A stretch of DNA of 64,000 nucleotides from Macrostomum lignano (lineage: Eukaryota), in contig NIVC01001443.1 in the NCBI GenBank assembly GCA_002269645.1, positions 38,443-102,442 of the forward strand, read 5' to 3'. This document shows, piece after piece, positions 1 to 42,400 of the stretch. Each line of letters begins with the position of its first letter. Within the stretch, counting starts at the first letter, position 1. Under the pieces are notes generated by a model that worked only from the letters and a program-made list of their open reading frames with translations, ran no database searches and was not told where the DNA came from. The position numbers and the translations under genes were made by a program.

Positions 1-433
1 CACGCGTTCGCCTTCTGCAGGAACCGGTCGCCCTCCTTGAACAAAAAGTGGTCGTCAATCAGCTGCTGCTGCACCTCCTTGGTCATCCCGGTCAGTGGGT
101 AATACGTGCCCTTCAGCTCGCCCGACATGTCCTTCAGCGTGCCCGACACGAGCTCCTCCAGCTGCTTGTAGTGCTCCTCCGTCATGTTCGGGTTGAACGG
201 GAACTGCTTCACCGACCTGCCGCACCGGATTCGGGTCGACACGACGTACTTTCCCTCCGGGTCCACGTCACCGAACTGGTTCGGGTCGCCCAGCGTGCAC
301 GGCGGGTGCCTGTCAGTCCGCTTGAAGCCTCCATGGTACTCCTCGATGATCGGGTCGAACAGGTCGGCGAACACCGTGTACGCCTCGGCGTCGGGAGCGT
401 AGACACCCACTCCGGAGTCGGGGTTCTCCACGC
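1..433 (-). CDS. Arginine kinase repeat exon C (partial, cut by window edge)
   Basis: Third copy, again offset by 1852 bp, same acceptor at 434. Confidence 0.88.
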
Positions 434-3400
434 CTGAAAACAGTAATTTGCTTCACTTAATCCAATGCTGTTACACCCTTTTGCAGCACCACAAAATACG
501 TACTACAGCGCCGTAAAACCACATGTGTCCCCTTCTGCTCAATTGCACCCTAACCAAAAACTCATACCCAACTAGCTCAGAAGAGACTGCTCAAAAGATT
601 ATACTTAAAGGGTTCAGAAACCGTAAAAATATGCTTCATCTGCATGCTCTTCATCAAGAATAACCTATCAGTAACAAGTAAATACATCAGGCTTATCAAC
701 AACTCCAGTACCAACCCTTATTTGTAAGTAAATCAATTTGTACTAAATGATACACCAGTGTGAATCGAAACAGATACACCAGTCTGAATCAAAACTGATA
801 CACCAGTCTGAATCAAAACTGATACACCAGTCTGAATCAAAACTGATACACCAGTCTGAATCAAAACCGATACACCAGTGTGAATCAAAACCGATACACC
901 AGAGTGAATCGAAACAGATACACCAGTCTGAATCAAAACTGACACACTAAACGGCACAATGACAACCAGGTACTTAAGGACCTTTAATTAGTTCAGTGAA
1001 ATTCCCCTTTAAGGTACAAAGAATGCATGCACAGTTGAATGAGAACCGTGGTCACTAATGTATTACTGCGTTAATTTTGTCAGCAAAAACAATATCCGTG
1101 CATTGTTGAAAATTGTAAGCAAATGCCGGTATGAATACTTCAGTTTTAGCAATGCGTACAATTCAATAAACACGTGAAAGAACCAAGAAATCAGAGTCTC
1201 CTCACCAGACTGGATCACGTCCTTCAGAGTTGATCCGAATGACGGAGTGCTCATGTTCTTGAGCTTGTCGACCACCTCCTTGGTGAGGTGCTTCTTCAGC
1301 AGTGAGTGGCAAGTGGCGTCGCCCTGCAGCTTCTGGTAGCCGGCTTCGATGTAGCTGACGACCTCGGTGTCGACGCCTTGCTCGAGCGCCTTCTCCATGC
1401 GGATGAGCTCGGCGATGCCGTGGTTCATCTTGCTGACAGCATCGAACTCGGTGAGACCCATGCGCTCCTTGTTGGAGATGTCGTAGAGTCCGCCGACAGC
1501 CTCGGAGTGCTCACCGGCTGAGCCGCGCACCTGCAGCTGGAACCGGTCGGCCACGCGCTGCAGAGCTTCCTGGCCTCCAGCGGCCAGCTTGGGCAGCTTG
1601 ATGTGCACCGAGGCGCGGATCGTGGTGCCCAGGTTCGTCGGGCAGAAGGTCAGGAAGCCGAGACGCTCGTCGTGGCTAAACGCCATCCGCTTCTCGATCT
1701 CGTTCACCGCGTTCACCAGCCGGCCGTAGACCTCCCGGATGCAGCCTCCCTTCTGCATCGAGATTATACGCATGTGGTCCTCCTCGCCGACCCACACTAG
1801 GAACGTCTTGCTGTCGTTGTGGTAGATGCCGCGACCCGTCGGCCAGTAGCGGCACGCGTTCGCCTTCTGCAGGAACCGGTCGCCCTCCTTGAACAAAAAG
1901 TGGTCGTCAATCAGCTGCTGCTGCACCTCCTTGGTCATCCCGGTCAGTGGGTAATACGTGCCCTTCAGCTCGCCCGACATGTCCTTCAGCGTGCCCGACA
2001 CGAGCTCCTCCAGCTGCTTGTAGTGCTCCTCCGTCATGTTCGGGTTGAACGGGAACTGCTTCACCGACCTGCCGCACCGGATTCGGGTCGACACGACGTA
2101 CTTTCCCTCCGGGTCCACGTCACCGAACTGGTTCGGGTCGCCCAGCGTGCACGGCGGGTGCCTGTCAGTCCGCTTGAAGCCTCCATGGTACTCCTCGATG
2201 ATCGGGTCGAACAGGTCGGCGAACACCGTGTACGCCTCGGCGTCGGGAGCGTAGACACCCACTCCGGAGTCGGGGTTCTCCACGCCTGAAAACAGTAATT
2301 TGCTTCACTTAATCCAATGCTGTTACACCCTTTTGCAGCACCACAAAATACGTACTACAGCGCCGTAAAACCACATGTGTCCCCTTCTGCTCAATTGCAC
2401 CCTAACCAAAAACTCATACCCAACTAGCTCAGAAGAGACTGCTCAAAAGATTATACTTAAAGGGTTCAGAAACCGTAAAAATATGCTTCATCTGCATGCT
2501 CTTCATCAAGAATAACCTATCAGTAACAAGTAAATACATCAGGCTTATCAACAACTCCAGTACCAACCCTTATTTGTAAGTAAATCAATTTGTACTAAAT
2601 GATACACCAGTGTGAATCGAAACAGATACACCAGTCTGAATCAAAACTGATACACCAGTCTGAATCAAAACTGATACACCAGTCTGAATCAAAACTGATA
2701 CACCAGTCTGAATCAAAACCGATACACCAGTGTGAATCAAAACCGATACACCAGAGTGAATCGAAACAGATACACCAGTCTGAATCAAAACTGACACACT
2801 AAACGGCACAATGACAACCAGGTACTTAAGGACCTTTAATTAGTTCAGTGAAATTCCCCTTTAAGGTACAAAGAATGCATGCACAGTTGAATGAGAACCG
2901 TGGTCACTAATGTATTACTGCGTTAATTTTGTCAGCAAAAACAATATCCGTGCATTGTTGAAAATTGTAAGCAAATGCCGGTATGAATACTTCAGTTTTA
3001 GCAATGCGTACAATTCAATAAACACGTGAAAGAACCAAGAAATCAGAGTCTCCTCACCAGACTGGATCACGTCCTTCAGAGTTGATCCGAATGACGGAGT
3101 GCTCATGTTCTTGAGCTTGTCGACCACCTCCTTGGTGAGGTGCTTCTTCAGCAGTGAGTGGCAAGTGGCGTCGCCCTGCAGCTTCTGGTAGCCGGCTTCG
3201 ATGTAGCTGACGACCTCGGTGTCGACGCCTTGCTCGAGCGCCTTCTCCATGCGGATGAGCTCGGCGATGCCGTGGTTCATCTTGCTGACAGCATCGAACT
3301 CGGTGAGACCCATGCGCTCCTTGTTGGAGATGTCGTAGAGTCCGCCGACAGCCTCGGAGTGCTCACCGGCTGAGCCGCGCACCTGCAGCTGGAACCGGTC

Positions 3401-4933
3401 GGCCACGCGCTGCAGAGCTTCCTGGCCTCCAGCGGCCAGCTTGGGCAGCTTGATGTGCACCGAGGCGCGGATCGTGGTGCCCAGGTTCGTCGGGCAGAAG
3501 GTCAGGAAGCCGAGACGCTCGTCGTGGCTAAACGCCATCCGCTTCTCGATCTCGTTCACCGCGTTCACCAGCCGGCCGTAGACCTCCCGGATGCAGCCTC
3601 CCTTCTGCATCGAGATTATACGCATGTGGTCCTCCTCGCCGACCCACACTAGGAACGTCTTGCTGTCGTTGTGGTAGATGCCGCGACCCGTCGGCCAGTA
3701 GCGGCACGCGTTCGCCTTCTGCAGGAACCGGTCGCCCTCCTTGAACAAAAAGTGGTCGTCAATCAGCTGCTGCTGCACCTCCTTGGTCATCCCGGTCAGT
3801 GGGTAATACGTGCCCTTCAGCTCGCCCGACATGTCCTTCAGCGTGCCCGACACGAGCTCCTCCAGCTGCTTGTAGTGCTCCTCCGTCATGTTCGGGTTGA
3901 ACGGGAACTGCTTCACCGACCTGCCGCACCGGATTCGGGTCGACACGACGTACTTTCCCTCCGGGTCCACGTCACCGAACTGGTTCGGGTCGCCCAGCGT
4001 GCACGGCGGGTGCCTGTCAGTCCGCTTGAAGCCTCCATGGTACTCCTCGATGATCGGGTCGAACAGGTCGGCGAACACCGTGTACGCCTCGGCGTCGGGA
4101 GCGTAGACACCCACTCCGGAGTCGGGGTTCTCCACGCCTGTCATAGTGTTTTGGGGTTTGTTTTGAATGCACACAACACTTCGTGATTGAGATTTAGTCT
4201 CTTGTGATTCCTATTACCTGACTGAATGACATCTTTTAGGGTGGATCCAAAAGTGGCCGTCTTCAGGCCCTTTAGTTTTTGCAGCACCTCGGCAGTAAGA
4301 TGTTTTTTTAGCAGGGACTTGCAGTTGGGATCGGATTGCAGCTTTTGGAATCCATCCTCGAGATAGGCAATGACGGCTGGGTCCACCTCGTTGCTCGCGC
4401 CGCTATGGGGGAGAATTTGTTTAATTTTTGCTTAGATATAGTTCGTTTAGTATAAAAATAAATTAATTAAACTGCATTACCTGTTATGATTCATGATTCA
4501 TGAAGGAATATTTTAGTTTATTTTGTGTGTAGTAGTATAAGTAGTAGTTCATGCATGCACTCAGATTTTTTGTTGTTTTGATTGTTTTGAAATTGGATTT
4601 TACGTTATTTATGGGAGCGGAACAGCCAGGATAGACAGATTAAAAAGCTTTCTAAAACAAAATGTCGAAGCAAGGTCAAAAGAATTGGTGTCTCTCATGC
4701 AGCTTCATTTGAAACTGGTTTAACGGAAATAATAGCATTCACACATTCATAGGAGAGGATTATGCAGTTAGTAGTTCCCCGTGACTTGACATGCAAGAGT
4801 TTTGAAAGCAACTGCAGCATGTCAGCACAATCTCCTTACTATCATTAGGGACTACTTACCCACTAACCGGTTGAGCATCTGCCGGTCTCGCCTGACCTCT
4901 TTGACCTCCTCGGCCTTTAAATAAGTTCCCCAT
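1..4933 (-). CDS. Multi-domain arginine kinase (phosphagen kinase), 3' end runs off the window start
   Basis: Exons in transcript order: 4933-4860 (MGNLFK..., donor GTAAGT, phase 2), 4402-4218 ([17 protein letters not shown]...KDVIQSG), 4137-3058, 2285-1206, 433-<1. All introns are GT-AG and phase-consistent. Motifs: [20 protein letters not shown] (guanidino-specificity region of arginine-kinase type), [46 protein letters not shown]. Confidence 0.95.
749..948. repeat. 24-bp minisatellite in arginine kinase intron (second copy at 2601-2800)
   Basis: About 8 copies of gatacaccagtctgaatcaaaact. Confidence 0.9.
1206..2285 (-). CDS. Arginine kinase repeat exon B (1080 nt), copy of exon A: end of domain 2 plus start of domain 3
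   Basis: Exactly 1852 bp from exon A; acceptor ...ttttcag at 2286, donor gtgagg at 1205; translation identical to exon A in the ORF track. Confidence 0.9.
3058..4137 (-). CDS. Arginine kinase repeat exon A (1080 nt, phase 1-1): C-terminal ~300 aa of domain 1 plus N-terminal ~60 aa of domain 2
   Basis: Acceptor ...atgacag at 4138, donor gtgagg at 3057; reads GVENPDSG...[18 protein letters not shown]...KDVIQSG. Confidence 0.93.
4481..4494 (-). CDS. Candidate alternative first coding exon of the arginine kinase (MNHN-S)
   Basis: ATG AAT CAT AAC AG|gtaatg: phase 2, in frame with the acceptor at 4403, giving a 78-nt intron similar to the next 80-nt intron. Confidence 0.45.
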
Positions 4934-7900
4934 TTTGACGAGCTGTCTTGTAGGATTAGACAGTTAAGGAGTTCACTCGAAGGGAACTAAACTTAGTCGA
5001 ATGGGAGTGGCTTGTGTGATTGATCGGCGCTCCCAGCTTGGCAGTGGCTGCACAGGAGTGGACACAGTGTGATCTGTGCAGGCAGGCAATGAAATCTCAG
5101 GCGCTGCGGGAGGTGTTGGGGTTGTGTCTGAGCTAAAATACGCGGCGGAATCGGGGGAGTGGGGGTTAGGCTCTCGTAGGACTGGGGGAGGGCCTGCCGC
5201 ACATGCGTTGAATTAAGTGTACATTATCGGTTGATAATCTTCTTGAGATTGGTTGTTACATTGAGACGTGTTGGTCGTCTCGCTGAGTGAGCATAAGGAG
5301 GAACAAGATAAGAAGGAATGAGGCAGTTCATTTAAAACATTTGTTAGTGTAAATATGACAGCTGCGAAGATTTGTACTTGTCTGCATTGGCACCCAACCC
5401 CGCTGTTTATTTGCGTGATGCAAACTAAAGAAACGTCACGCCAAATGTACATGGCATATATAAGCGAGTGTACGCGGTGACTGCATGGGTTGGTTGGTTG
5501 AGCAAATATTAAACTGCGGTCTGGTTTAGGGACTTGGCGGTGTCAACGGCAAGGCGCGGGCAAGTGCAGCAAAAAGAGAAGGGAGGTAGGGGGACCCTGA
5601 TCAACATGTTTGCTGTCAAAGGGTAAAAAATTCGACTAAATAAAAACACGCTAGGTGGATAATGCGCGCATATCTCTGGTTAAGAAATCGACTCCGCATG
5701 CAAAACGCAATTTAAAGCTATTTTTCATATATACTCAAGTCCCAGCTCCTGGACAAGAGCCAGAAGAATTTGACAAAACCTACTGAGTTATACCAAGGAC
5801 GCATTCAAACTGTATTGCGCATATCATATGCGTAGTGCGAATCTCTAAGAAACAGTCTGTTATATGTGTCAATCAAAGAGAACTTACATCGTTACCGGAT
5901 CCATCGTTTTAAATAGTTTTTTTGGAACCAAGAGTCAACACTGGGTTTACCCAAGAAAGCAGAGCTTTGTCCCTATAGGAACTCTACAAAAAAGACTGAG
6001 ATTGATGTCTAACTAGCTAATGAGAGGAAAAGCTGCTGAAGCGCGGTTCTGGAGGAAGATTAGGGCAGCAAAAGAGGATCCGTGGATCCGGAGTGGATGA
6101 AGTTGAAATAGGCGAAGCCAAGGCCTCCCCTGTGCGCAAGCCGGTATGGGGAAGTCATGGGGTTGCAGAAGGGCCGGCGCAGCCGCGCAGATTGCAGGCC
6201 TTGCCAGTCTCGAAGAGCTTCCGCGTACAGACACGCAGCAGCTGCTTGCCAGCAGCCCATCGTCTGTCTGGATGGCGATCTTCTAAAATCAGAGTGCACA
6301 GCAAAAGCAGAAAGTGGGGATTTATGGCTCAGCGTACGTCTGGCATCTGCGTCGCTTGGGGACGGGCAAGGGAAGAATGTTTCTTGGAGATCAAAGCTTT
6401 TGGAGGGCTCCTACCCGTTCGCTCCAGCATCCGACAAGCAGCAGAATGCGGTCACGAAGTATTGACCCAAAAATTCTGTCTGTTCCACCGTTGCCCCTAT
6501 AACCCCCCCCACAGCGCACAGCACGGGCCAGGCCATCGAATGCCATTTCCCAGCGGTGCAGATTTTTCAAAGGTTATTCCTCCTTCCTTTTGCCTACTGC
6601 CTTGCCTGTAGACCACACCTTCGTGGCCTTTTGCTAAGCATTGATCCGTTTATCCTCCACAGTTTTCTGGGTTGGCTCCGCTAGAATTTTTCTGTTTGTA
6701 GAGATCTTGAAATGTGGTGATTTGTGCCACATTTTTCGGTTTCTTCATTTAATTTTTTCTGGTCTGTTCTGGTTTTGATACTCGTATCTGTCTGCTTTGT
6801 GTGGTCTCGGTCTGTCTAGTCTTGTGTGCTGATTCTGTAAATTGTAACGCAATGCGACATATTTTAAATTATAATATACATGTATACTTGTATGCGTAGT
6901 AATTTAACCATGCTGCATATCAAATTGCCCCCTAAACTGAACACTAGCGTATGTAAAATTTGGAGCGGCGGGAAAGATTAGATTCGGGTGGCGCCATGCT
7001 GTGTATGTGCTGCTTTGGCACCTGCAGTTGCAGGTCTCTGTATGCATTGATCACATGCAAGTGCCGACTCGTATGCGACTATTTACACGATTCGGTAAGT
7101 TGTCGGTAGCGACTGCGAGGTACGCATGCATTGATGATATGGTATAAAACAACGCACCGTCCCTGCACCACGTGTCTACCTGTAGTATCGTTATCTCATG
7201 ATCACTGCAAAATTAGAGACGACAAGCAAGCACAAAATCGTGGAGCTATACAAGCGTATTGTCAATTTTGTTTATTTGCTTTCAAAGTCGGTTTGCACGA
7301 CGCGGTATCAGATTTATAGTGAAGCTGTTATGTGTCAGAATCAGCCAACAGACAAGCATAAACAATTAATCAAAAGCATCACTTAATTTTGCTCGTGCAG
7401 TCACAAAAAATTGGATCACTTAAAAACTTCGTGTCTGTTTCATGAAGATATTTAGTGATAACGTATAAAAGTAAACCAAGGTTAACTGGTCCGCGGAACG
7501 GTCTTAAATTCAGGTTAGTAACTACGGACAGCGGTTCATTAAAAAGTTATCAGCTAAACCTAACTGATCTGATCTGGATAGACGTGTCTCATGGTTACTC
7601 AGACCGAATATCAGCTTCATTTTATCCGGAGTCTATTACCAAGAAATAGTTAGCAAGAGATAAAACTCACTCAAAGCCTTAGCAACTAATCTTGTACTTC
7701 TGAAATCGGGTATCGAGAATGCATACCCGAGAATGGGGATTTGGCTCTATCAAGCAAAATTTGCTCGTATAACGGCCATACATCATATGTGAATATGAAT
7801 ACCAGTTATATGTTACACTGATCGATTCTCTACTCTACAAGGGACTGTACATGTAGGAACCATTCGGGATTATAGTCCTGAGAATCCCTTTAGACGATTG

Positions 7901-8771: not shown

Positions 8772-9899
<1,128 letters not shown>

Positions 9900-12684: not shown

Positions 12685-15600
12685 ATGCGCGGTCCACTAT
12701 CGCTGCCACTACCCAGGCGACTGCGCCAACTGGTGCTGGCCAATTTTGCCTGTCCTGGCAATCGCACTGGCCACCTCGCTCGCCTGGCATTTCGCCTCGC
12801 CTCCCATGAGCAGCAGCACGCCTCCCGCCTGTGCGCCGAGGCTTGCATTGATTTGTTGCCAGCAGCAACACCCGCCTCGCCGGCGACCTGCCTGGAGGTT
12901 GGCTTTGGCGCCGGGCACGCGCTGGCCGAGCTGCGACGACTTCGGCCAGTTGGCGAGCTTCGCCTTCTGGGCGTCGACGCGAGCAGCTTGGCTTTGAAGC
13001 TGGCAACGGCGCAGCTTGGCGGCGAGCCCGACAATGCAAAGCTGTTCCACTGCCAGGCCGACGACCTGCTGCCTGTGGCCACCGGCAGCTGCAACCTGGT
13101 TGCTCAGGTAGCTTAGCCTAGGTTGGCTTCGGCTGCCGATTCTTCAGTGTCTGCTCCCCCGGGTCTTCAGGTGTTGCTACCCCTTTATAGATTTTTTCAG
13201 GCGCTGCTATCTTTAGTTCCTCAGGTGCTATTTGCTATTGCCCCCCGTTCTTCAGGTGCTTTTGCCCCCCGGTTCTTTATGTGCTTTTGCCCACCGGTTC
13301 TTTATGTGCATTTGCCCCCCGGTTCTTTATGTGCTTTTGCCCCCCGGTTCTTTATGTGCTTTTGCCCCCCGGTTCTTTATGTGCATTTGCCCCCCGGTTC
13401 TTTATGTGCATTTGCCCCCGGTTCTTTATGTGCATTTGCCCCCCGGTTCTTTATGTGCTTTTGCCCCCCCCCCCCGGTTCTTTATGTGCTTTTGCCCACC
13501 GGTTCTTTATGTGCATTTGCCCCCGGTTCTTTATGTGCTTTTGCCCCCCGGTTCTTTATGTGCTTTTGCCCCCGGTTCTTTATGTGCTTTTGCCCCCCGG
13601 TTCTTTATGTGCATTTGCCCCCCCCCGGTTCTTTATGTGCTTTTGCCCCCCGGTTCTTTATGTGCATTTGCCCACCGGTTCTTTATGTGCATTTGCCCAC
13701 CGGTTCTTTATGTGCATTTGCCCCCCGGTTCTTTATGTGCATTTGCCCCCCGGTTCTTTATGTGCATTTGCCCCCCCCCGGTTCTTTATGTGCATTTGCC
13801 CCCGGTTCTTTATGTGCATTTGCCCCCCCCGGTTCTTTATGTGCTTTTGCCCCCCGGTTCTTTATGTGCTTTTGCCCCCCCCCGGTTCTTTATGTGCATT
13901 TGCCCCCCGGTTCTTTATGTGCATTTGCCCACCGGTTCTTTATGTGCATTTGCCCCCCGGTTCTTTATGTGCATTTGCCCCCCGGTTCTTTATGTGCTTT
14001 TGCCTCCAGTTCTTTATGTGCATTTGCCCCCCCCCGGTTCTTTATGTGCTTTTGCCCCCCCCCCGGTTCTTTATGTGCTTTTGCCCCCCCGGTTCTTTAT
14101 GTGCTTTTGCCCACCGGTTCTTTATGTGCTTTTGCCCCCCGGTTCTTTATGTGCTTTTGCCCCCTCCGGTTCTTTATGTGCATTTGCCCCCGGTTCTTTA
14201 TGTGCATTTGCCCCCGGTTCTTTATGTGCATTTGCCCCCCGGTTCTTTATGTGCTTTTGCCCCCGGTTCTTTATGTGCATTTGCCCCCCGGTTCTTTATG
14301 TGCATTTGCCCCCGGTTCTTTATGTGCATTTGCCCCCCCCCCGGTTCTTTATGTGCTTTTGCCCACCGGTTCTTTATGTGCATTTGCCCCCCCCCGGTTC
14401 TTTATGTGCATTTGCCCCCCCGGTTCTTTATGTGCTTTTGCCCCCCCCGGTTCTTTATGTGCTTTTGCCCCCCCCCGGTTCTTTATGTGCTTTTGCCCCC
14501 CCCCCGGTTCTTTATGTGCTTTTGCCCACCGGTTCTTTATGTGCTTTTGCCCCCGGTTCTTTATGTGCTTTTGCCCCCCCCCGGTTCTTTATGTGCATTT
14601 GCCCCCGGTTCTTTATGTGCATTTGCCCCCCGGTTCTTTATGTGCATTTGCCCCCCGGTTCTTTATGTGCATTTGCCCCCCCCTGGTTCTTTATGTGCTT
14701 TTGCCCCCCCCGGTTCTTTATGTGCATTTGCCCCCGGTTCTTTATGTGCATTTGCCCCCGGTTCTTTATGTGCATTTGCCCCCCGGTTCTTTATGTGCTT
14801 TTGCCCCCGGTTCTTTATGTGCATTTGCCCCCGGTTCTTTATGTGCTTTTGCCCCCCGGTTCTTTATGTGCATTTGCCCCCCCCGGTTCTTTATGTGCTT
14901 TTGCCCCCCCCGGTTCTTTATGTGCATTTGCCCCCCGGTTCTTTATGTGCTTTTGCCCCCCGGTTCTTTATGTGCATTTGCCCCCCGGTTCTTTATGTGC
15001 TTTTGCCCCCCGGTTCTTTATGTGCATTTGCCCCCCGGTTCTTTATGTGCTTTTGCCCCCCGGTTCTTTATGTGCTTTTGCCCCCCGGTTCTTTATGTGC
15101 TTTTGCCCCCCCCGGTTCTTTATGTGCATTTGCCCCCCGGTTCTTTATGTGCTTTTGCCCCCCCCCGGTTCTTTATGTGCATTTGCCCCCCCCCCCCGGT
15201 TCTTTATGTGCTTTTGCCCCCCCCCGGTTCTTTATGTGCATTTGCCCCCCGGTTCTTTATGTGCTTTTGCCCCCCCCCCGGTTCTTTATGTGCATTTGCC
15301 CCCCGGTTCTTTATGTGCTTTTGCCCCCCGGTTCTTTATGTGCTTTTGCCCCCCCCCCGGTTCTTTATGTGCATTTGCCCCCGGTTCTTTATGTGCATTT
15401 GCCCCCCGGTTCTTTATGTGCTTTTGCCCCCCGGTTCTTTATGTGCTTTTGCCCCCCCCCCCGGTTCTTTATGTGCATTTGCCCCCGGTTCTTTATGTGC
15501 TTTTGCCCCCCCGGTTCTTTATGTGCTTTTGCCCCCCCCGGTTCTTTATGTGCATTTGCCCCCCGGTTCTTTATGTGCTTTTGCCCCCCCCGGTTCTTTA

Positions 15601-17994
15601 TGTGCATTTGCCCCCGGTTCTTTATGTGCTTTTGCCCCCCCCCCGGTTCTTTATGTGCTTTTGCCCCCCGGTTCTTTATGTGCTTTTGCCCCCGGTTCTT
15701 TATGTGCATTTGCCCCCCGGTTCTTTATGTGCTTTTGCCCCCGGTTCTTTATGTGCTTTTGCCCCCCCCCGGTTCTTTATGTGCATTTGCCCCCCGGTTC
15801 TTTATGTGCTTTTGCCCCCCCCCCGGTTCTTTATGTGCATTTGCCCCCGGTTCTTTATGTGCTTTTGCCCCCGGTTCTTTATGTGCTTTTGCCCCCCCGG
15901 TTCTTTATGTGCTTTTGCCCCCCGGTTCTTTATGTGCATTTGCCCCCCGGTTCTTTATGTGCTTTTGCCCCCCGGTTCTTTATGTGCTTTTGCCCCCCCC
16001 CCCCGGTTCTTTATGTGCTTTTGCCCCCCCCCCGGTTCTTTATGTGCTTTTGCCCCCCCCCCGGTTCTTTATGTGCATTTGCCCCCCGGTTCTTTATGTG
16101 CTTTTGCCCCCCCCCCGGTTCTTTATGTGCATTTGCCCCCGGTTCTTTATGTGCTTTTGCCCCCGGTTCTTTATGTGCTTTTGCCCCCCCCGGTTCTTTA
16201 TGTGCATTTGCCCCCGGTTCTTTATGTGCTTTTGCCCCCGGTTCTTTATGTGCTTTTGCCCCCCCCCCGGTTCTTTATGTGCTTTTGCCCCCGGTTCTTT
16301 ATGTGCTTTTGCCCCCCGGTTCTTTATGTGCATTTGCCCCCCGGTTCTTTATGTGCTTTTGCCCCCCCCGGTTCTTTATGTGCTTTTGCCCCCCCCCGGT
16401 TCTTTATGTGCATTTGCCCCCCGGTTCTTTATGTGCTTTTGCCCCCCCCCGGTTCTTTATGTGCATTTGCCCCCGGTTCTTTATGTGCTTTTGCCCCCGG
16501 TTCTTTATGTGCTTTTGCCCCCCCCGGTTCTTTATGTGCATTTGCCCCCGGTTCTTTATGTGCTTTTGCCCCCCCCCGGTTCTTTATGTGCATTTGCCCC
16601 CGGTTCTTTATGTGCTTTTGCCCCCCGGTTCTTTATGTGCTTTTGCCCCCCCGGTTCTTTATGTGCTTTTGCCCCCCGGTTCTTTATGTGCATTTGCCCC
16701 CCGGTTCTTTATGTGCTTTTGCCCCCCGGTTCTTTATGTGCTTTTGCCCCCCCCCGGTTCTTTATGTGCTTTTGCCCCCCCCCCGGTTCTTTATGTGCAT
16801 TTGCCCCCGGTTCTTTATGTGCTTTTGCCCCCCCGGTTCTTTATGTGCTTTTGCCCCCCCCGGTTCTTTATGTGCTTTTGCCCCCCGGTTCTTTATGTGC
16901 TTTTGCCCCCCCGGTTCTTCATGTGCATTTGCCCCCGATTCTTTATGTGCATTTGCCCCCCGGTTCTTTATGTGCTTTTGCCCCCCGGTTCTTTATGTGC
17001 ATTTGCCCCCCGGTTCTTTATGTGCATTTGCCCCCCGGTTCTTTATGTGCATTTGCCCCCCGGTTCTTTATGTGCATTTGCCCCCCGGTTCTTTATGTGC
17101 TTTTGCCCCCGGTTCTTTATGTGCATTTGCCCCCCGGTTCTTTATGTGCATTTGCCCCCCGGTTCTTTATGTGCTTTTGCCCCCCGGTTCTTTATGTGCT
17201 TTTGCCCCCCCCGGTTCTTTATGTGCTTTTGCCCCCCCCCGGTTCTTTATGTGCTTTTGCCCCCCCCGGTTCTTTATGTGCTTTTGCCCCCCAGTTGTTC
17301 AGGTGCTACTGCCCTCAGTTGCTAAGGTGCTACTGACCCCAGTTGCTAAGGTGCTACTGACCCCAGTTGTTCAGGTGCTACTGCCCTCAGTTGCTAAGGT
17401 GCTACTGACCCCAGTTGCTAAGGTGCTACTGACCCCAGTTGCTAAGGTGCTACTGACCCCAGTTGTTTCAGGTGCTACTGCCCTCAGTTGCTAAGGTGCT
17501 ACTGACCCCAGTTGCTAAGGTGCTGCTGACCCCAGTTGCTAAGGTGCTACTGACCCCAGTTGTTCAGGTGCTACTGCCCTCAGTTGCTAAGGTGCCACTG
17601 CCCCCAGTTGCTAAGGTGCTGCTGCCCCCAGTTGCTAAGGTGGTGCTGCCCCCCGTCCATCAGGGCTTGCTAAACCTAACCCTGCAAGCTATGGTTCCCC
17701 AACGCCCCACCGGCCCCGCCCCAATTCCAGGTGAACTGCTTCGGCGTGCTGCCCCGCGCTCAGTTGGCCGGGGCCTGCAGAGAAGCCTACCGGGTGCTCC
17801 GTCCGGACGGCCGGCTGGTGGCGGTGGCCGACTGCTGGCTGACCAGCCGGTTGGTCGCGGAGCTCGGCCGGCCGGATCTGCTGGACAGCCTGGCTGCCCT
17901 GGAGGCGGCCGGCTTCTCCAAGTTGAAGCACAGTCGGCGCCAGTGCTGCCTGACTGGCCGGCCGCTGCACCTGGTCACGGCTGAGGTCCGCTGA
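12685..17994 (+). CDS. Class I SAM-dependent methyltransferase, 2 exons, about 228 aa
   Basis: Exon 1 12685-13107 (motif I LEVGFGAG, motif II LLGVDAS; donor gtagct, phase 0). Exon 2 17731-17994 (acceptor ccaattccag; REAYRVLRPDGRL post-motif typical of Methyltransf_11-like enzymes). Substrate unknown. Confidence 0.85.
13150..17655. repeat. Intronic minisatellite: GGTTCTTTATGTGC(T/A)TTTG plus a variable C-run, followed by a 24-bp sub-array
   Basis: Core array about 13245-17290; 24-mer ccccagttgctaaggtgctactga at about 17290-17655. Confidence 0.97.
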
Positions 17995-18126
17995 CCCCCC
18001 TTGGAGGAGTGTCCACGCAGACGGAAAAGTGTCTTTCTGACTTTAAGAGCAGTCCAGCGCCTTTTTCAGTTCGTGCATATTAAAGTGACCGTTTGTTACC
18101 TGCGGCCACAGATACTTGAATAAGTA

Positions 18127-18503
18127 GATGGGCCACTCAGGCATATGTACTTAGTAAAACAGCTTTCTACTTTCAATTCAGTAGCAAATAAGAATACATA
18201 AGCTTTTATAAAAAGGCAGCTGAAATGACTTTGATAAGTTTAGAAGCCAAAGCTAATCGGTTCAGCCATAATGTACATTAGCCAGTCCACTGAAATGTAC
18301 ATGGCAGCTTTAGGCTGGAATTCCGTGGAAGGCAATAACGGGCGAGGCGGGGGGGGGGGGTAGTGTGGAAAGGCGTCGTTGGAAGGTTTAATCTGGAAGA
18401 GCCCATAAATGAACCTTGACTTTAAAAATACATTAAAATGCTTCAGTTTAACTTACTACTGAACTGATAGTAGCTTACACGCAAATGTGCTGAGTGGCCC
18501 ATC
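18127..18503. mobile_element. MITE with TIRs and TA flanks (Tc1/mariner-like signature)
   Basis: TA|gatgggccactcag ... ctgagtggcccatc|TA. Confidence 0.65.
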
Positions 18504-19113
18504 TAGTTATTCTCATATTGTATCATTGTATCCAAATGATTGAAAACCCCAAGGAATTACTCAAAATAAAATATGAATTGCAGAGACTATGGAACTTGAA
18601 TGAAAAATTGAAACTGGTGGTAGCTGCACCCATGAGACAGGCTGTAAAACAAAAAACCAGCTTGGCTTTCTGTTTCTACGAAAGTGTCCTAGAGGTTTCA
18701 GACCAGAAGTCCTGCAGTATATCTGCAGTTATTAGCCTTGTTAGCTCCTATTTTAATTGCTGCTTCATCCGGTTCATCAATATGTTGTCAGCCATGTTTT
18801 CTGTTGTGGATGATTTTTTGGTTGCTAACCAATGTGTTCAGGCATTTATGAGCCTTTGGCGTCTGCCAGTGTCTGTCTGCTCAGCTGCAGAAAATTGTAT
18901 TTTAATAAACTGCGTTCTCGGATATTCGATTTCTTAGCATAGCTGCAATCTTTTTTTATGACAGCAAACATTTATAGTTATTTGTTTGACTTAATTTGTT
19001 AATTTCTTATTTTTAAATACTTTTTGCGCAACTGGTGTCCGTATAGCGCAGTTATTGGTACATTTATCTGCAGTCGAGGTGCATTGACTAAGTCTTTCCC
19101 TATCACGCTATGG

Positions 19114-19475
19114 CAGAGGTTGGCAAACTTTTTTACCTCGAGGCCAGATAGACAACCTAGCGCATGAGGGGAGAGAGGAGAGAGAAAAGAGATGAGATGA
19201 CAGATGAGAGAAAGGAGAGGCGAGGCGAGGCTAAAAGAGAGTAGACGAAAGGAAATGAGAGATGAAATAGAAGAAGAGAGGAGAATCGAAAGGGAAAGAG
19301 AGGAGAGAAGGGAGAGCAGGTGAGAGGATAAAGTAGAGGAGAGAAATGAGAGGAGATTAGAGAGAAGGGAGCTGAGAAGAGACTACAATAGCAATCCGGC
19401 CCGCTCAAGGTTTGTCTCTTCTCAAAGGTCCGAGGGCCGGATGGAGAGGCTTCGCTGGCCGGAGTTTGCCTGCTG
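19114..19475. mobile_element. hAT-like non-autonomous element with GA-rich interior; related fragment at 61744-61870
   Basis: Starts cagaggttggcaaact and ends ggccggagtttgcc; the segment caatagcaa(t/c)ccggcccgctcaaggtttg recurs near 61810. Confidence 0.5.
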
Positions 19476-19499
19476 CTTTCAGTTCTTATTCTACGTGCT

Positions 19500-19777
19500 A
19501 ATATAATAACAATGATAATAATTTATTACACCTACCCTATGGTTTTTGCGCGGCGCATTTTAAGGCTGCGTACGGCTGTCCAGTCCAAGGACTGGGGGGG
19601 TCGCCCTCATGCAATTACCCCAGCCAATGCTGGTATCCATTTTACAGCTGGGTGAACTGAATCGATTCAGAGTTAAGTGTCTTGCTCAAGGACACGAATT
19701 TTTCCGAGTGGATTAGGAATCGAACCCCCGACCTTTCAGTCGTGAGTCTGAAGCTCTAACCACTAGGCTACAACCCT
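19500..19777 (-). mobile_element. tRNA-derived SINE
   Basis: Minus strand: A box TAGCCTAGTGG (19770-19760), B box GGTTCGATTCC (19726-19716), then gtgtccttgagcaagacacttaac and cacccagctgtaaaatggatacc (conserved-core-like), then a TTA-rich tail. Confidence 0.8.
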
Positions 19778-20734: not shown

Positions 20735-22258
20735 ATGGATCTCATAATGGACCAGGCCGCTCACTTCTACGATAGCTACCAATTCTGGCTGAGAAAAGCC
20801 GGTGAGTGAAACCATTGGAATTAGAATTTCAATTAGAGCTCCTATCTGTAATGGTTGCTATAGGAACTGTTGCCAACGCTTGACTGCACTCGTACGACCT
20901 CCGATTCGGATGTTATTATCGCATTGCCTTCTGATAACTTTGATTTTCAGCACGATAATCACAATATTCACAATATGCTGTTATTATTTTTGCACTCCGC
21001 AGACAAGCGCGTGGCAGACTGGCCGCTAATGAAATCCTACTGGCCCACCTGGGCCCTGATGTTCGGCTACCTGATCGCGGTGAAGGTCGGCCAGCGCCTC
21101 ATGGCCAGCCGCCAGCCCTTCCGCCTGCGCTGGCCCCTGTTCGCCTACAATATCTGCCTTGTGGTGCTCAACTTTCACATATTCTCCGAGGTAACTGAAG
21201 ATAACCGAGATATCTACGGATATTTTTTGTTCTAAATATATTCTTTCTTGACAGACTTTAGCCTGCAGTCTACTGCTACGCTCGTAGTATCAGTAGAGTG
21301 GTAGACAAAATTGCAACCTTATTTTATTCAATGGCCTGAAAAGTTAAATTAAGCACGCGGCAATAATTTCAGCTACTGTACTGCTCTTGGAAACGCAACT
21401 ACAACTACCTGTGCCAGCACATCGACTACTCGGACAATCCCTACGAGGTTCGCATCGCCAAGGCCCTGTGGTGGTACTACTTCTCCAAGTGTATCGAGTT
21501 TATGGACACAATGTTCTTTGTGCTGAGAAAGAAAAACACGCAGATCAGCTTTCTGCATCTCTACCACCACGCCACCATGTTCCCGATCTGGTGGATCGGC
21601 GTGAAGTGGGTGGCCGGCGGTCAGTCTTTCCTCGGCGCCATGATCAACTCCTTCATTCACGTGCTCATGTACACCTACTATGGGCTGAGCTCCCTTGGAG
21701 AGGCTGTGCAGAAGTTCCTGTGGTGGAAGCGGTACTTGACCCGGCTGCAACTGGTGAGGGAGAGTCTTATGCAGCAATCCAATGCACGCAACACTCAAAG
21801 CACAAAAGCCCTGAATCCCAGGAATCCATGCACCACTCTAAATGCGTCCAGTGAAACTCCCCACGTGTGTAGATTTAAAACAATCATACTTGGCTAATGA
21901 AACTGTCCGCAGATTCAATTCTTCATCGGGATGCTGGTCGGCACTCATTCCCTGCTAACTGGCTGCGGCGCCGTCCCCATCTGGATGGAGTACTCCGGCA
22001 TGGTGTACGGCCTCTCCATGATTGCACTGTTCGCCAACTTCTATCACAAAGAGTACGTCACCAGAAGCAATTTGAACAAGCGGGAAGCCGTCGACAAAGT
22101 GAGTGTCCAGAGAAAATCTTATTCACAATTTGTACTTTTTCTGAGTTCGATCGTTTCGAAAACGAATCGCCCATCTGTTGGCATTGCAGCGACCGAACGG
22201 GCAGGCTAACGGACACGCCACTAACGGGCACGTCGCGTCCTCAAAGAAGCAACATTGA
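20735..22258 (+). CDS. elovl4: Very-long-chain fatty acid elongase, ELOVL4-like, 5 exons, about 296 aa
   Basis: Exons 20735-20801, 21003-21190, 21373-21753, 21913-22098, 22190-22258, all GT-AG and phase-consistent. Motifs: KCIEFMDT, HxxHH box [31 protein letters not shown]-terminal KKQH* ER-retrieval signal. The ELOVL4 subfamily call is from remembered similarity. Confidence 0.93.
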
Positions 22259-22406
22259 ATAGAAATTAATGAATGTAACAGAGGCTCTCATGCGATCTCA
22301 GTCGCGTCTGTGGCTTTCAATCTGTTTGGTACAGGCACCTGTTGTTTATGGTCGAAACTGGCATCGATCGACCATAAAAAACATGGCCATAGACTACGCC
22401 CGTGTA

Positions 22407-25304: not shown

Positions 25305-28050
25305 CCCCTGAGAAAAGACACCTGGGACAATAGGACACCTGGGACAATAGGACACCTGAGACAAAAGGATGCCTGGGACAATAGGATACCTGGGACAATA
25401 GGATATCCTGGGACAATAGGACACCTGGGACAATAGGACACCTGGGACAATAGGACGCCTGGGACAATAAGACACCTGGGACAATAGGACACCTGGGACA
25501 ATAAGACACCTGGGACAATAAGACACCTGGGACAATAAGACACCTGGGACAATAAGACACCTGGGACAATAAGACACCTGGGACAATAAGACACCTGGGA
25601 CAATAGGACACCTGGGACAATAGGACACCTGGGACAATAAGACACCTGGGACAATAAGACACCTGGGACAATAGGACACCTGGGACAATAGGACACCTGG
25701 GACAATAAGACACCTGGGACAATAAGACACCTGGGACAATAAGACACCTGGGACAATAAGACACCTGGGACAATAAGAAACCTGGGACAATAAGAAACCT
25801 GGGACAATAGAACACCTGGGACAATAAGACACCTGGGACAATAAAACACCTGGCACAATAAGACACCTGGAACAAAAGACACCTGGGGCAATAGGACACC
25901 TGGGACAATAAGACACCTGGGACAATAAGACACCTGGGACAATAAGACACCTAGGACAATAAGACACCTGGGACAATAAGACACCTGGGACAATAGGACA
26001 CCTGGGACAATAGGACACCTGGGACAATAAGACACCTGGGACAATAAGACACCTGGGACAATAAGACACCTGGGACAATAGGGCACCTGGGACAATAAGA
26101 CACATGGGACAATAGGACCCTGGGACAATAAGACACATGGGACAATAGGACACCAGGGACAATAGGACACCAGGGACAATAGGACACCTGGGACAATAAG
26201 ATACCTGGGACAATAAGATACCTGGAAAAATGAGACAACTGGGACAATAAGACACCTGGGACAATAGGACACCCGGGACAATGAGACACCTGGGACAATA
26301 GGACACCAGGGACAATGAGACACCTGGGACAATAGGACAGCTTGGACAATAGGACACCTGGGACAATAGGACACCTGGGACAATAAGATACCTGGGACAA
26401 TAAGATACCTGGAAAAATGAGACAACTGGGACAATAAGACACCCGGGACAATGAGACACCTGGGACAATAGGACAGCTGGGACAATAAGACAGCTGGGAC
26501 AATAAGACACCTGGGACAATAGGACACCCGGGACAATGAGACACCTGGGACAATAGGACAGCTGGGACAATAGGACACCTGGGACAATAGGACACCTGGG
26601 ACAATAGGACAGCTGGGACAATAGGACACCTGGGACAGTAGGACACCTGGGACAGTAGGACACCTGGGACAAAAAGACACCTGGAACAATAGGACACCTG
26701 GAACAATAGGAAACCTGGGACAATAGGACACCTGGGACAATAGGACAGCTGGGACAATAGGACACCTGGGACAATAGGACAGCTGGGACAGTAGGACACC
26801 TGGGACAAAAAGACACCTGGAACAATAGGACACCTGGGACAAAAAGACACCTGAAACAATAGGACACCTGGGACAAAAAGACACCTGGAACAATAGGACA
26901 CCTGGGACAAAAAGACACCTGGGACAATAAGACACCTGGGACAAAAAGACACCTGGAACAATAGGACACCTGGGACAAAAAGACACCTGGAACAATAGGA
27001 CACCAGGGACAATGAGACACCTGGGACAATAGGACAGCTTGGACAATAGGACACCTGGGACAATAGGACACCTGGGACAATAAGATACCTGGGACAATAA
27101 GATACCTGGAAAAATGAGACAACTGGGACAATAAGACACCCGGGACAATGAGACACCTGGGACAATAGGACAGCTGGGACAATAAGACAGCTGGGACAAT
27201 AAGACACCTGGGACAATAGGACACCCGGGACAATGAGACACCTGGGACAATAGGACAGCTGGGACAATAGGACACCTGGGACAATAGGACACCTGGGACA
27301 ATAGGACAGCTGGGACAATAGGACACCTGGGACAGTAGGACACCTGGGACAGTAGGACACCTGGGACAAAAAGACACCTGGAACAATAGGACACCTGGGA
27401 CAAAAAGACACCTGGAACAATAGGACACCTGGGACAAAAAGACACCTGGAACAATAGGAAACCTGGGACAATAGGACACCTGGGACAATAGGACAGCTGG
27501 GACAATAGGACACCTGGGACAATAGGACAGCTGGGACAGTAGGACACCTGGGACAAAAAGACACCTGGAACAATAGGACACCTGGGACAAAAAGACACCT
27601 GGAACAATAGGACACCTGGAACAATAGGAAACCTGGGACAATAGGACACCTGGGACAATAGGACAGCTGGGACAATAGGACACCTGGGACAATAGGACAG
27701 CTGGGACAGTAGGACACCTGGGACAAAAAGACACCTGGAACAATAGGACACCTGGGACAAAAAGACACCTGAAACAATAGGACACCTGGGACAAAAAGAC
27801 ACCTGGAACAATAGGACACCTGGGACAAAAAGACACCTGGGACAATAAGACACCTGGGACAAAAAGACACCTGGAACAATAGGACACCTGGGACAAAAAG
27901 ACACCTGGAACAATAGGACACCTGGGACAAAAAGACACCTGGAACAATAGGAAACCTGGGACAAAAAGACACCTGGAACAATAGGAAACCTGGGACAAAT
28001 ATACACTTGGGACAAAAATACACTTGGGACAATAAGACACCTGGGACAAC
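25305..28050. repeat. 17-bp satellite, about 160 copies, with higher-order structure
   Basis: Unit ctgggacaata(g/a)gacac with recurrent variants. Confidence 0.97.
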
Positions 28051-28679
28051 AGGAAACTATAACAACTGATGACGGCTACGAGGGCACCAAGACACTTGGG
28101 TAGACAGGTCGCTAGACTGGGATACTGGGAGGCAAAGCAACTCAGTCAGAAGAGCTCTAACCTACCGCTAGCAGAATTGTGCAGCTCGGTGCTGCCTGCG
28201 AGCCGTCAACTTCGTCTGCTATTTCTGCTGGCAGCTGTCGCCTATGCCGCCACCTTGTCGCTGCTGATTCTGCATAGCGCTCTCAACGGCACCAACGGTA
28301 GTCGACGAAATTTGGTTGCTAACCTGCCGCTCCAGAGGGACGTGGCCTTGAAGAAGAGTCCGATCGCTCAGCAGCGACGGCTGAGTAGCGGTTTTTGGAT
28401 AAATAAAAGGCGCATTGCCTTACAAAACTGGCTCGCAGGGCAGCGGACTCGTCAGTGGTCTTCCGTAAAGCTGGCCAGCTCGACTTTGGCCACATTAAGC
28501 ACAGTCGGCTCGACAGGCAGGCCAGCAAGGAGACTACAGATTGAAGCAACTGAGAATGCTTGAAGAGACCACTGAAGGCGTGTAGGGAGATGGTAGATGG
28601 TGACGTGGATACGTGATGTGAGAGAGATAAGAGAGTAAGGATGAGGGATGGGGAGAGGGATTGAGGTGGAGGTGTGCGG

Positions 28680-31102: not shown

Positions 31103-32132
31103 TCACTTGTAGCATCGAGAGGCCACGGCCTGGGTGCACTCCGCTGGCTTCGCGCCCTTGTAGGTGGAGCAGACTAGCTGGAGAAGGTTGGCCTCGGCCT
31201 GCTTCTGGATATCCTCGTTGTGCACCTGCGGGTGGGAGGTGGATGTTAGGTATACGGAGGTGAACTCTACGGCCATTCCTATTGGATGAAACAATTGTCA
31301 CGTGACTTCTATGAGCCAATAACGTCACACAAACCGATAGACGCTATTGATTGGCCGAGACAACAGTCACGTGACAATTGTTTCGTCCAATAGTGGCTCG
31401 TGTGACGTGTATACAGTGCCAATAGAAACGACAGAGTGAAATCGCTTTCAAACTACTCACCCCGTTGATGGTGACCCAGGGCACGTATTGAAGCGGCGGA
31501 TTGAGAGTTCGAGTTCGCTCGGCCATCCAGTGCTCGAGCTTGTCGCCCCACTCGTTGTGAGAGCAAGTGTTGATATGGTCCCAGCTGATGTTGAGCGCCA
31601 CCGCGCACTGCTCCGCCACCTGGAGCATGTTGTCGGCGGTGGAGCGCTCCTCCACGCAGGACAGGTAGGCCATCCAGCGGTCTGGCTTGTCATTCAGCAG
31701 TCCAATGGCGCAGGTCTCAACTTGGTTGCCCTCGCACTCAGCTGGGCCGTGCTGGCATTCGAAGATCCATCGGTGGCCCTTGATAGTCTCCTTGGCGTTG
31801 CCGTAGGGCACCACGTCGACCATCATGATGCCGGAGGCGTTCAACTTGCGCCAGGCGGGGTACAGCTGCTTATTAAAGAAGGCCTTGCAATCGGGGCAGA
31901 GGGACTCCATGTAAATGGTCACCTCCACCGGCTCGGCGGCCGTCCTCTGCACTCGTTTAGCAGATCGGCACTGGCTAGAAACTCCGCACGCTTCGGCGAC
32001 ATCGTCAGAGCCGCACCAGACTGACGGCGACTGGTTGCAATCGCGGTTGGGATTGCTGTTAAAACGCAGAACAGTGCTAGAGGCAAAAGCTGTGCAGGTG
32101 CATAGCATCAGAGCTGTCACTAACAGTTGCAT
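31103..32132 (-). CDS. ifi30: Gamma-interferon-inducible lysosomal thiol reductase (GILT/IFI30-like), 2 exons, about 264 aa
   Basis: Exon 1 32132-31461 (signal peptide, ESLCPDC active site, signature CQHGPAECEGNQVETC, YVPWVTING; donor gtgagt). Exon 2 31225-31103 (LVCSTY...C...CYK*). Confidence 0.93.
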
Positions 32133-39400: not shown

Positions 39401-42400
39401 CTATTATAACGCCTACATCTCGACTAGCACTCTTCGAATGTTTGCCAGCTAGCCGGATGTGTTTGCCAGCTAGCCGGATGTGTTTGCCAGCTAGCCGGAT
39501 GTGTTTGCCAGCTAGCCGGATGTGTTTGCCAGCTAGCCGGATGTGTTTGCCAGCTAGCCGGATGTGTTTGCCAGCTAGCCGGATGTGTTTGCCAGCTAGC
39601 CGGATGTTTTGCCAGCTAGCCGGATGTTTTGCCAGCTAGCCGGATGTTTTGCCAGCTAGCCGGATGTTTTGCCAGTTAGCCGGATGTTTTGCCAGCTAGC
39701 CGGATGTTTTGCCAGCTAGCTTCTTGACTACTATGACTACTTCATGCCCCAAACCCAACCCTGAACGCTCACTCCGCCATCCAACAGACAGCAACTTCGT
39801 GTTAGGCAACGCGCAGGCGAAGGACAGGCCCATTGTGTACTGCTCCGACGGATTCTGCGAGCTGACTGGCTTCGCCCGGGCCCAGGTGATGTCCAAGCCC
39901 TGCGCCTGCCGGTTCTTGTGGGGCCAGGCCACCGAGCCCACCGAGCGGCAGAAGATCGAGGACAGCTTGCTAGCGCAGAGGGAGCTGCAAACTGAGGTCG
40001 TCTTCTACAAGAAGACTGGTGAGCTCAACTGCTTTACGAATGTCTGCTGCGGGAGTCTCACAGCTTTTTGACTGGCAAGGGGCGGTGAATCCTGGTCGAG
40101 GATTAACTGTTTCGTTACTAGAGTGGGTGACCGGAGTCAGGAGTCCTGAAAAGTTTCTTTTAAACAAATAACAACAACAAAATACGCGACCCCGCATGTA
40201 CAGTCACAGCTAGAGCAGGGCGCGTCAGATGGCGCGCCGCAGAGCCTGGGAGCGAACAAAGTCCGCTCCATTGGCAGTGTCGGGCGCCCCAGCGTCGCAC
40301 AGCAGGCAGTCCACGTATCGACGGGTTCGGGCCTGACCCCGCCTGAACGGACAGGTTGGGGGCAGTAGCCCTCGGCCCGGATCACGTGACCCGCCAGTTG
40401 AGGTCGCCACCGGCGCAGAATGATGGACGGGCGCTGCAGCTTGGCCCGATCGTACAGGGCCTCGGTCCCAACGCTCTCGTCAGCTCGAAAGGCCGCACGG
40501 AGCGCCGAGTCCAGCTGCCGCTCTAGCGTAGCCGTCAGCGTCCACGTCTCGGCGTTGTATAGCAGGACGGTTTCGACCACCGCCTGCCACAGCCGAGCCC
40601 TCTGGCGGTCGGGCAGCGCTTCGGACTGGAGGACGGCTCGGATCGAACGAAAGGCCGCCCAGGCAAGTCCTCTGCGCCGCCGGAGGTCCTCTTCCACGTG
40701 GGGCACCAGACCGCCGAAGTAGGTGAACCGCTGGCAGCGTGCGAGCCTGGTCGTCTGCCCGTCTGCGCCGCGGCACGTCAGGTCCGCTGGGATGTCGGCC
40801 GGCACAGTCAGCACCTCGGTCTTCAGCGTGTTGACGATCAGACCGACGCTCGATGCCACCTCGACCAGCTTGTCGATCTGGCGCTGGCGCCTTCAACGGA
40901 CGAGGACAGGAGGGCGAGGTCGTCGGCGTAGCCAAGCACGCTTAGGCGCTTTTCGCCGTGGCGGTGACCGATGCGTCTGCGCAGCAGGAAGCCGTCATTA
41001 GCCGAGGGGAGTGCGGTCCGAAGCACCGAGTCCAGCAGCAGCACGAAGAGGAACGGCGCTAGCGTGTCGCCCTGCAGAACTCCTGATGAAGTATCGAACA
41101 GGTCAGACAGGCCGTCCGCCGTCACCACAGCAGCTCGAGTATCGCAATACAGCGCCATGACAGCGTCGATTAGCTGCTGGGGTACCCGGTAGGCTTGAAG
41201 GACAAAGGGAAGCGCAGCTCTCAACACCGAATCCAACGCCTTTCGAAAGTCAACGAAGACAATGATCAGCGTAGACTGGCGGATGCGCGCCTCCTCGATG
41301 ACACGGCGGAGTGCGAGGATCTGTGTCACTGTACCGCGTTGCGGCCGGAATCCGTTCTGCTCGTACCGCAGTTACGGGTCCAGCACCGACTGCAGACGAT
41401 CGAGCAGCAGCCGGTTGAAGAGCTTCGCGGTGCAGGACAACATCAGCGAGATCCCGCGGTGGTCTTCCTTCCGCGTTGTCCCTGCCTTCTTCGGGATCGG
41501 CACGATGTGCCCGACGGTCCACTCGGTAGGCGCAGGAGCGCCGGCGAGCACGCGGTTCATGACGCCTGTGACCTGGGAGGCCACACAGCGGAGCCGCAGC
41601 GCTTCGACCGGGACTTCGTCGGGGCCGAGCGCCTTGCCGCCTGATGTTTTCCGAGCGAACAGCACAACGTCCTCCGTGGTGACTGGGCTGGTGCAGAAGT
41701 CCTCCTCAGCTGGGAGCGGCGTGTCCAGTGAGAGCGCAAAGCTGGCGGGCAGCGGCGACGCGGGCGCGTTCACGATGCCGGCGAAGAAGTCGCGCAATTC
41801 ATTCGCGACTTTTAAACATAACGATAAAAAAGTTAGGGCCGCTGTACACTCCTGTGTGAGTGCGTGCCTGTGCGTCTGACTGCGTACGTTTCCGCGCGCT
41901 TGTTTGCCTGCTTAGGGGAGTCGGCGGAATGGGCAGTAATGCCTCTCGCCAGTTGTGCGACAATCCCGGTTAAAGTGCGCCAGGGTGCATACAGCCCCCT
42001 GCGTCTAATAAAAAAATAAAAATGTTATTGATGTGTCTCGGAATGGAAGATTCCTGTTCCTGCAGGGTGGGCTGTGAGGGGGTGTTGGGCTGTAGTGTAT
42101 GTCATGCTCTGTGAAATTTATCGAGCCCAGATAGCGAGACCAGTTTCAAAATCCCTCAACCTGCCGGACACACCCTCGTGTGTGTCCTATTTTGGAACCA
42201 CGAGCGCAGATATGCGAGCGGAAAGTGGCCATTTGAGCAGCTGGCCGCGGCCCTGGAGATTTTCTTGGCACCAGCCGCGGCTTCCGTCCCCACCTGGCCG
42301 CTCGAATTTGCAACCTTGATCTCTTCGGCCCTAAGCTGGCAGCGTTTATCGCTTTATCGCTTGAAAAAATATATTACCTCCCAGGCGGTGCTTAAGGGAG

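Follow-up and report, generated by a model that had tools for sequence, protein, structure and literature searches.

The window analysed here, 64,000 nucleotides of Macrostomum lignano contig NIVC01001443.1, contains on its minus strand the 5' end of a gene that encodes three or more arginine kinase domains in one contiguous protein. The account that best explains this 5' end is one in which translation starts in an exon (e1a) encoding a leader that begins MGNLFK, the leader possibly serves as an anchor, and a second candidate first exon (e1b, MNHNS) is a product of chance. Taken as a whole, we consider this account reasonably likely.

Gene structure and the repeated unit

Scripted splicing of e1a to the downstream exons (Table 1) yields an uninterrupted kinase frame of 950 residues that runs to the window edge, and the corresponding frame from e1b is also open, with 930 residues. 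The first-pass annotation had both candidate exons ending in phase 2 and joining the exon at 4402 in frame, and direct reading together with the scripted splicing agrees. Pfam finds three N-terminal domains (PF02807) and three catalytic domains (PF00217) in the 950 residues (E values of 3e-99 and 3.5e-159), bearing out the earlier proposal of a multi-domain enzyme built from arginine kinase. The sequence model comprises two complete kinase domains and one cut domain, with consistent splice phases and no stop codons, and the catalytic motifs CPTNLGT (containing the reactive cysteine), EEDH, and GEHSE, along with the Arg clusters, are intact in the translated domains.

Arginine kinases in the PDB match this protein with E values of 1e-163 to 1e-173, as against about 1e-86 for creatine kinases. 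By predicted substrate class, the kinase is closest to arginine kinases and not to creatine, glycocyamine, or lombricine kinases. In the alignments with PDB arginine kinases the match begins at about residue 31 of the query, leaving residues 1 to 30 as a predicted leader outside the fold. An intron after IQSG is common to this gene and to the M. lignano single-domain arginine kinase gene.

Table 1. Positions of the arginine kinase gene features and of other elements in the window
Feature	Position	Strand	Details
Putative 5' UTR / promoter-proximal region	4934-5201	-	268 nt, ATG-free, 56% GC
Probable exon 1 (e1a), coding	4860-4933	-	24 codons + 2 nt of Gly codon; donor TGG/GTAAGT
Intron 1	4403-4859	-	457 nt, 34% GC; 3' end ttctcccccatAG
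Candidate micro-exon e1b, inside intron 1	4481-4494	-	MNHN-S; donor CAG/GTAATG
Exon 2	4218-4402	-	185 nt; kinase fold start and N-terminal subdomain of domain 1; ends KDVIQSG
Intron 2	4138-4217	-	80 nt
Exon 3	3058-4137	-	1080 nt (360 codons); domain 1 catalytic part, linker, domain 2 N-subdomain
Intron 3	2286-3057	-	772 nt; 24-bp x 8.3 minisatellite at 2600-2799
Exon 4	1206-2285	-	1080 nt, copy of exon 3; domain 2 catalytic part and domain 3 N-subdomain
Intron 4	434-1205	-	Identical to intron 3
Exon 5, cut by window edge	1-433	-	Domain 3 catalytic part
(TAG)n microsatellite	8985-9545		~187 copies; presumed intergenic, upstream of the arginine kinase gene
Class-I SAM methyltransferase gene (Methyltransf_25/11), two exons	12685-13110, ~17650-17930	+	Single intron almost all minisatellite, 25 bp x 159 (13229-17314)
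ELO-family fatty-acid elongase exons	~20870-22260	+	PF01151, E = 2.7e-33
GILT gene (PF03227)	31344-32132	-	Protein 100% identical to M. lignano BOX15_Mlig022516g1
EAG/ERG-like potassium channel exons	~39700-54000	+	PAS_9 at 39.7 kb, pore Ion_trans_2 at 51.8 kb
RVT_1 reverse-transcriptase retroelement	40137-41800	-	Inside first intron of the potassium channel gene
Long minisatellite arrays (examples)	25317-28054; 42793-44832		17 bp x 161; 20 bp x 100
Dispersed repeats	18108-18513; 19113-19776; 61765-61880		81-86% identical to flanks of the M. lignano single-domain arginine kinase gene on other contigs (L001/L002)

Window positions 1-2288 equal 1853-4140 base for base, which gives a repeat with a period of 1852 bp and 100% identity. 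Each unit consists of the 1080-nt exon and the 772-nt intron with its own minisatellite, and the array passes the window edge, hence the count of at least three domains. The N-terminal subdomain encoded by exon 2 lies outside the unit and is 67% identical to the N-subdomain within it, a divergence that points to an old origin for a gene of two domains or more. For the additional unit or units there are three readings: very recent origin, homogenisation by concerted evolution, or inflation by the assembler.

Elsewhere in the window, the GILT protein, through its full identity to BOX15_Mlig022516g1, identifies the species as M. lignano. The DNA around the GILT gene is 96-98% identical to the public Mlig_3_7 contig NIVC01001373.1, and the window appears to represent another haplotype, subgenome, or assembly than that contig. 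The potassium channel exons are spread across about 14 kb, with introns filled by minisatellites. More than 25 long minisatellite arrays are present in the window.

The probable first coding exon

The frame of exon 2 is closed upstream by a TAA at 4434-4432, and exon 2 contains no in-frame ATG, so an upstream coding exon is needed. The acceptor AG of exon 2 is at 4404-4403, immediately preceded by ttctcccccat. Listing all phase-2 ATG-to-GT frames upstream of this acceptor returned 143 frames in 8.2 kb, among which e1a has the second-best donor and is the longest frame among those with good donors. From its ATG (4933-4931) it reads through 24 codons and two further nucleotides to 4860, where GTAAGT follows in phase 2, and the start context gtcAAAATGG is a strong to optimal Kozak match (A at -3, G at +4). 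We defined an e1a-class candidate as an ATG-to-donor stretch of at least 74 nt with an equal or better donor and the same A-3/G+4 context. Across both strands of the 64-kb window (128 kb), the only such candidate is e1a itself; dinucleotide shuffles gave a density of 0.002-0.014 per kb.

The surroundings of e1a also point to a conventional start. The 268 nt before it contain no ATG where the regional density would predict 5.1 (P ~0.006), although shuffles of local composition put this at only P ~0.07-0.08. An in-frame TAA lies upstream of the ATG at 4966-4964. GC content is 56% upstream of e1a and 54% within it, falling to 34% directly past the donor, as in the other introns; the GC3 of e1a, read from the sequence, is below that of the remaining exons. 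The presence of Gly2 is weak evidence by itself, since the G at Kozak position +4 already forces a GNN codon. Taken together, e1a is probably the true first coding exon. An alternative e1a donor, CCG/GTTAGT (4868/4867), was rejected because it is in phase 0 and mismatches the phase of the acceptor.

Searches of a collection of 5.8 billion proteins, first with the leader joined to domain 1 and then with the first 158 residues, returned no orthologue above 84% identity and no protein bearing the leader. Exact look-ups of the exon-3 open reading frame (ATG 4144) and of the unit open reading frame (GTG start) in the same collection were without a match. No transcript, EST, or annotated protein of the window kinase was found in the databases searched.

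The earlier annotation paired e1a with a switchable cytosolic isoform starting at e1b, whose ATG (4494-4492) starts four codons and two further nucleotides that end at 4481 in phase 2, directly before GTAATG. A gene with two promoters, one for an anchored MGNLFK isoform and one for a cytosolic MNHNS isoform, would draw on the shared phase and good donors of the two exons and on the 78-nt intron that would separate e1b from exon 2, close to the 80 nt of the genuine intron 2. Arginine kinase genes of arthropods and corals also have alternative first exons, some encoding a Met-Gly leader and some not. Dinucleotide shuffles underestimate the background of short ATG..GT frames (0.7 expected versus 7 seen in the 8.2 kb upstream), so we took the density counted across the entire window, which is 16 candidates equal to e1b per 128 kb, both strands included (0.125 per kb). 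By this measure merely ~0.06 e1b-grade candidates would arise by chance in the 457-nt intron 1, which favours the micro-exon, but seven as good as e1b are present in the upstream 8.2 kb. Its surroundings are AT-rich and intron-like at 34% GC, and an out-of-frame ATG at 4501, 7 nt upstream of e1b, runs into a TAA just before the donor, with two further ATGs (4552 and 4556) 58-62 nt upstream. The donor GTAAT falls outside GT[GA]AG, the motif typical of M. lignano (PMC8629364). A leaderless enzyme is, moreover, already provided by a separate single-domain M. lignano gene (P0030; 83% identity), whose N terminus, MSKCPLAVTG, has no such leader; a transcript from run SRR7428099 is 84% identical to the window kinase. 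The leaderless cytosolic arginine kinase would thus be supplied by this paralogue, and we regard two genuine first exons as improbable. Most likely, e1b is an ATG..GT pair that happens to be in phase within intron 1, at a frequency near the chance level for the window, and the switchable isoform is not supported. Treated as a cassette exon with an acceptor near 4560, e1b brings in a stop codon. For annotation, the analysis places the gene start at e1a, and annotating e1b would be unwarranted without reads.

In M. lignano, 21-30% of mRNAs receive a 35-nt spliced leader that ends in ATG, and the trans-splice acceptor motif is [T/C]TNCAG (PMC8629364). Joined at 4402 or at the AG at 4432-4431, this leader would place its ATG outside the kinase frame, and exon 2 offers no other start codon in frame; both joins were rejected as giving no functional start. 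The join at 4402 is the one that the first-pass annotation had named as refuting. The true start could instead lie in an undetected upstream exon, or be supplied by the spliced leader at acAG/CTC (4943/4942), in which case neither candidate ATG would be used. In favour of the latter are the share of M. lignano genes that undergo trans-splicing (about 21-30%) and the 9 nt from 4942 to the ATG at 4933, which would keep the spliced-leader ATG in frame; the glycine would then not be N-terminal and myristoylation would not take place. The AGs at 4948-4947 and 4944-4943 nevertheless mismatch [T/C]TNCAG, and the in-frame stop at 4966-4964 allows few extra codons. The spliced-leader ATG would stand in a weak context (T at -3) where that of the ATG at 4933 is optimal, and the ATG-free stretch upstream resembles a conventional 5' UTR. 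Such a start is therefore unlikely. We also considered that the locus is non-functional, the perfect repeats being an expansion made in assembly or a very recent duplication that may not be expressed, and the e1a leader a relic. The identity of the units extends to their minisatellites, the public Mlig_3_7 contig of the neighbourhood is 2-4% different from the window, and no annotated M. lignano protein matches the window arginine kinase; NCBI annotation is, however, sparse here, with the GILT gene alone called in 21 kb. The open exons, consistent phases, and intact catalytic motifs argue against a dead locus, as does the 67% N-subdomain identity that marks a gene of at least two domains as old, and we hold this reading to be very unlikely.

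The leader as a candidate acyl anchor

The leader specified by e1a has 25 residues, is rich in Gly, Arg, Gln, Pro, and Ala, and carries a net charge of +4. Gly2 is present (ATG GGG at 4933-4928) provided that the ATG at 4933 is the start codon. Four basic residues (Lys6, Arg8, Arg12, and Arg16) precede the first acidic residue, Asp19, and this charge layout would suit electrostatic membrane binding. The stretch MGNLFKG fails at position 6, where it has Lys, in two myristoylation patterns: PROSITE PS00008, which wants [STAGCN], and the Castrec NMT motif, quoted in PMC9018777 as M-G-[^DEFRWY]-X-[^DEKR]-[ACGST]-[KR]. Asn3 and Phe5 are permitted, and position 7 is Gly, without the preferred but non-mandatory Lys or Arg. 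The description of this leader as a myristoylation-type sequence in the first-pass annotation thus stands for Gly2 and for the basic, acid-poor stretch behind it, and does not stand for position 6.

The S6R substitution turned a G-alpha-o peptide cytosolic, with loss of membrane binding (PMC9018777). Human CYRI-B (FAM49B) begins MGNLLKVLT (PDB 7ajk chain C) and is myristoylated at Gly2, labelling being abolished by G2A (bioRxiv 10.1101/164905). Its first six residues equal MGNLFK save for the permissive position 5, with Lys6 in both. CYRI-B is an unrelated protein, with Val at position 7 where the window has Gly, and is a precedent for NMT acceptance only. Acylation of the leader stays plausible because MGNLLK of CYRI-B is experimentally myristoylated despite its Lys6, and because of the Lys at this position we rate it as about evenly balanced: given that e1a is used, the leader may equally well be N-acylated or not.

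Similar leaders are found in many relatives. N-terminal extensions were present in 87 of the retrieved arginine kinase homologues, and 28 of these begin Met-Gly, mostly in agreement with PS00008; examples are MGIFVSKK, MGVCSSAE, and MGGCASKDKK, and, in barnacles, MGNLLGRKKSH and MGGIFGKKKSH. The MGNLL of the barnacle leader is nearly the MGNLF of the window. In Glossina fuscipes, MGGCASKDKK (isoform X2) is encoded by a separate exon ~5 kb upstream of a common core exon, and a second isoform (X1, MFALWY...) uses other first exons. This Glossina gene (L005, 10001-78861) spans 69 kb, and its 5' exons form at least two alternative sets, with MFALWY... exons at 10001 and 19520, the MGGCASKDKK exon at 72645-72797, and the shared core exon at ~77780. 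The arthropod isoforms belong to the same arginine kinase clade as the window kinase (67-71% identity) and share with its proposed gene model a short Met-Gly leader exon spliced to the exon where the fold starts. They differ in being single-domain and in having leaders that fit acylation motifs, many with a Cys that could be palmitoylated; RefSeq models back their alternative exons, whereas MNHNS in the window is unsupported. Some copepod-type members of this subclade (P0103, P0114, and P0121) have hydrophobic, signal-peptide-like N termini and no Met-Gly leader, which suggests further variants of arginine kinase targeting.

Leaders also occur on contiguous enzymes. Montipora has two-domain arginine kinases of 755 residues beginning MGLFPSKSKPSK (isoforms P0026, P0028, and P0029) and of 704 residues without a leader (P0025 and P0027), so that a contiguous multi-domain kinase with leader-bearing and leaderless isoforms, the arrangement proposed in the first-pass annotation, exists in this coral. 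Two-domain enzymes are also known from Anthopleura japonicus (PDB 4RF6) and from clams. This group differs from the window kinase in belonging to another arginine kinase lineage (~47% identity) and in having two domains only, and the coral leader fits both motifs; the functions assigned to these enzymes come from annotation. A convergent invention, as the annotation suggested, is therefore an overstatement of novelty: Met-Gly leaders are widespread in relatives, two-domain arginine kinases included.

Two further parallels are lipid-anchored phosphagen kinases. TbAK3 of Trypanosoma brucei is a myristoylated, Unc119-dependent flagellar arginine kinase (bioRxiv 10.1101/2020.05.07.083568; PMC4517888). 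Like the window enzyme it is an arginine kinase with an N-terminal extension and Gly2; the G2A-sensitive flagellar membrane location is a property of TbAK3. It is, unlike the window kinase, a single-domain protist enzyme with its own gene and not a leader exon, and it fits MGxxxS/T, which the window leader does not. The creatine kinase of the sea-urchin sperm tail, a contiguous trimer, exists in both myristoylated and non-myristoylated pools, as stated in PMC3080659 where it cites Quest 1997, and on the same source the annotation was right to call this three-domain flagellar enzyme myristoylated. The sea-urchin enzyme and the predicted window enzyme both place several complete domains in one polypeptide behind a Gly2 leader and would presumably be the membrane-tethered end-point of a phosphagen shuttle. 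The sea-urchin enzyme is a creatine kinase of independent origin whose myristoylation is proven, whereas that of the window leader is plausible; the units in the window are DNA-identical tandem copies and the domains number at least three. No relevant paper on arginine kinases with three domains came up in a literature search, and a 2024 review of arginine kinases describes two-domain forms only. Leader-exon design and an anchored multi-domain phosphagen kinase are both already known; what would be new is their combination with at least three arginine kinase domains.

Proposed picture and its meaning

In the picture we favour, transcription most likely starts upstream of 4934 and translation would start at the ATG at 4933. 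Exon e1a would add the 25-residue leader, joined over intron 1 to exon 2 at the start of the kinase fold. Removal of Met1 would expose Gly2, with the four basic residues behind it, an arrangement open to N-myristoylation and to retention on acidic membranes, as seen in many relatives. From the exon features, phases, and domain content read in the DNA, we infer the use of e1a, its acylation, and a membrane or ciliary location.

A tentative and rather doubtful extension is that the M. lignano product is a concatemer of at least three identical arginine kinase domains, myristoylated and tethered to ciliary or cortical membranes, the domain number being set by the recently amplified, possibly copy-number-variable 1852-bp unit under concerted evolution. 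Macrostomum sperm are not known to bear flagella, which would favour epidermal or other cilia over sperm as the site of a ciliary role.

If true, the concatemer would be for arginine kinases what the sea-urchin flagellar enzyme is for creatine kinases. A leader that is both used and acylated would make this the third independent lipid-anchored phosphagen kinase, after the sea-urchin creatine kinase and TbAK3, and the first in which an anchor is combined with at least three fused arginine kinase domains. M. lignano is transgenic and transparent, and the functions of a multi-domain phosphagen kinase and of its tethering would be directly testable in this animal.
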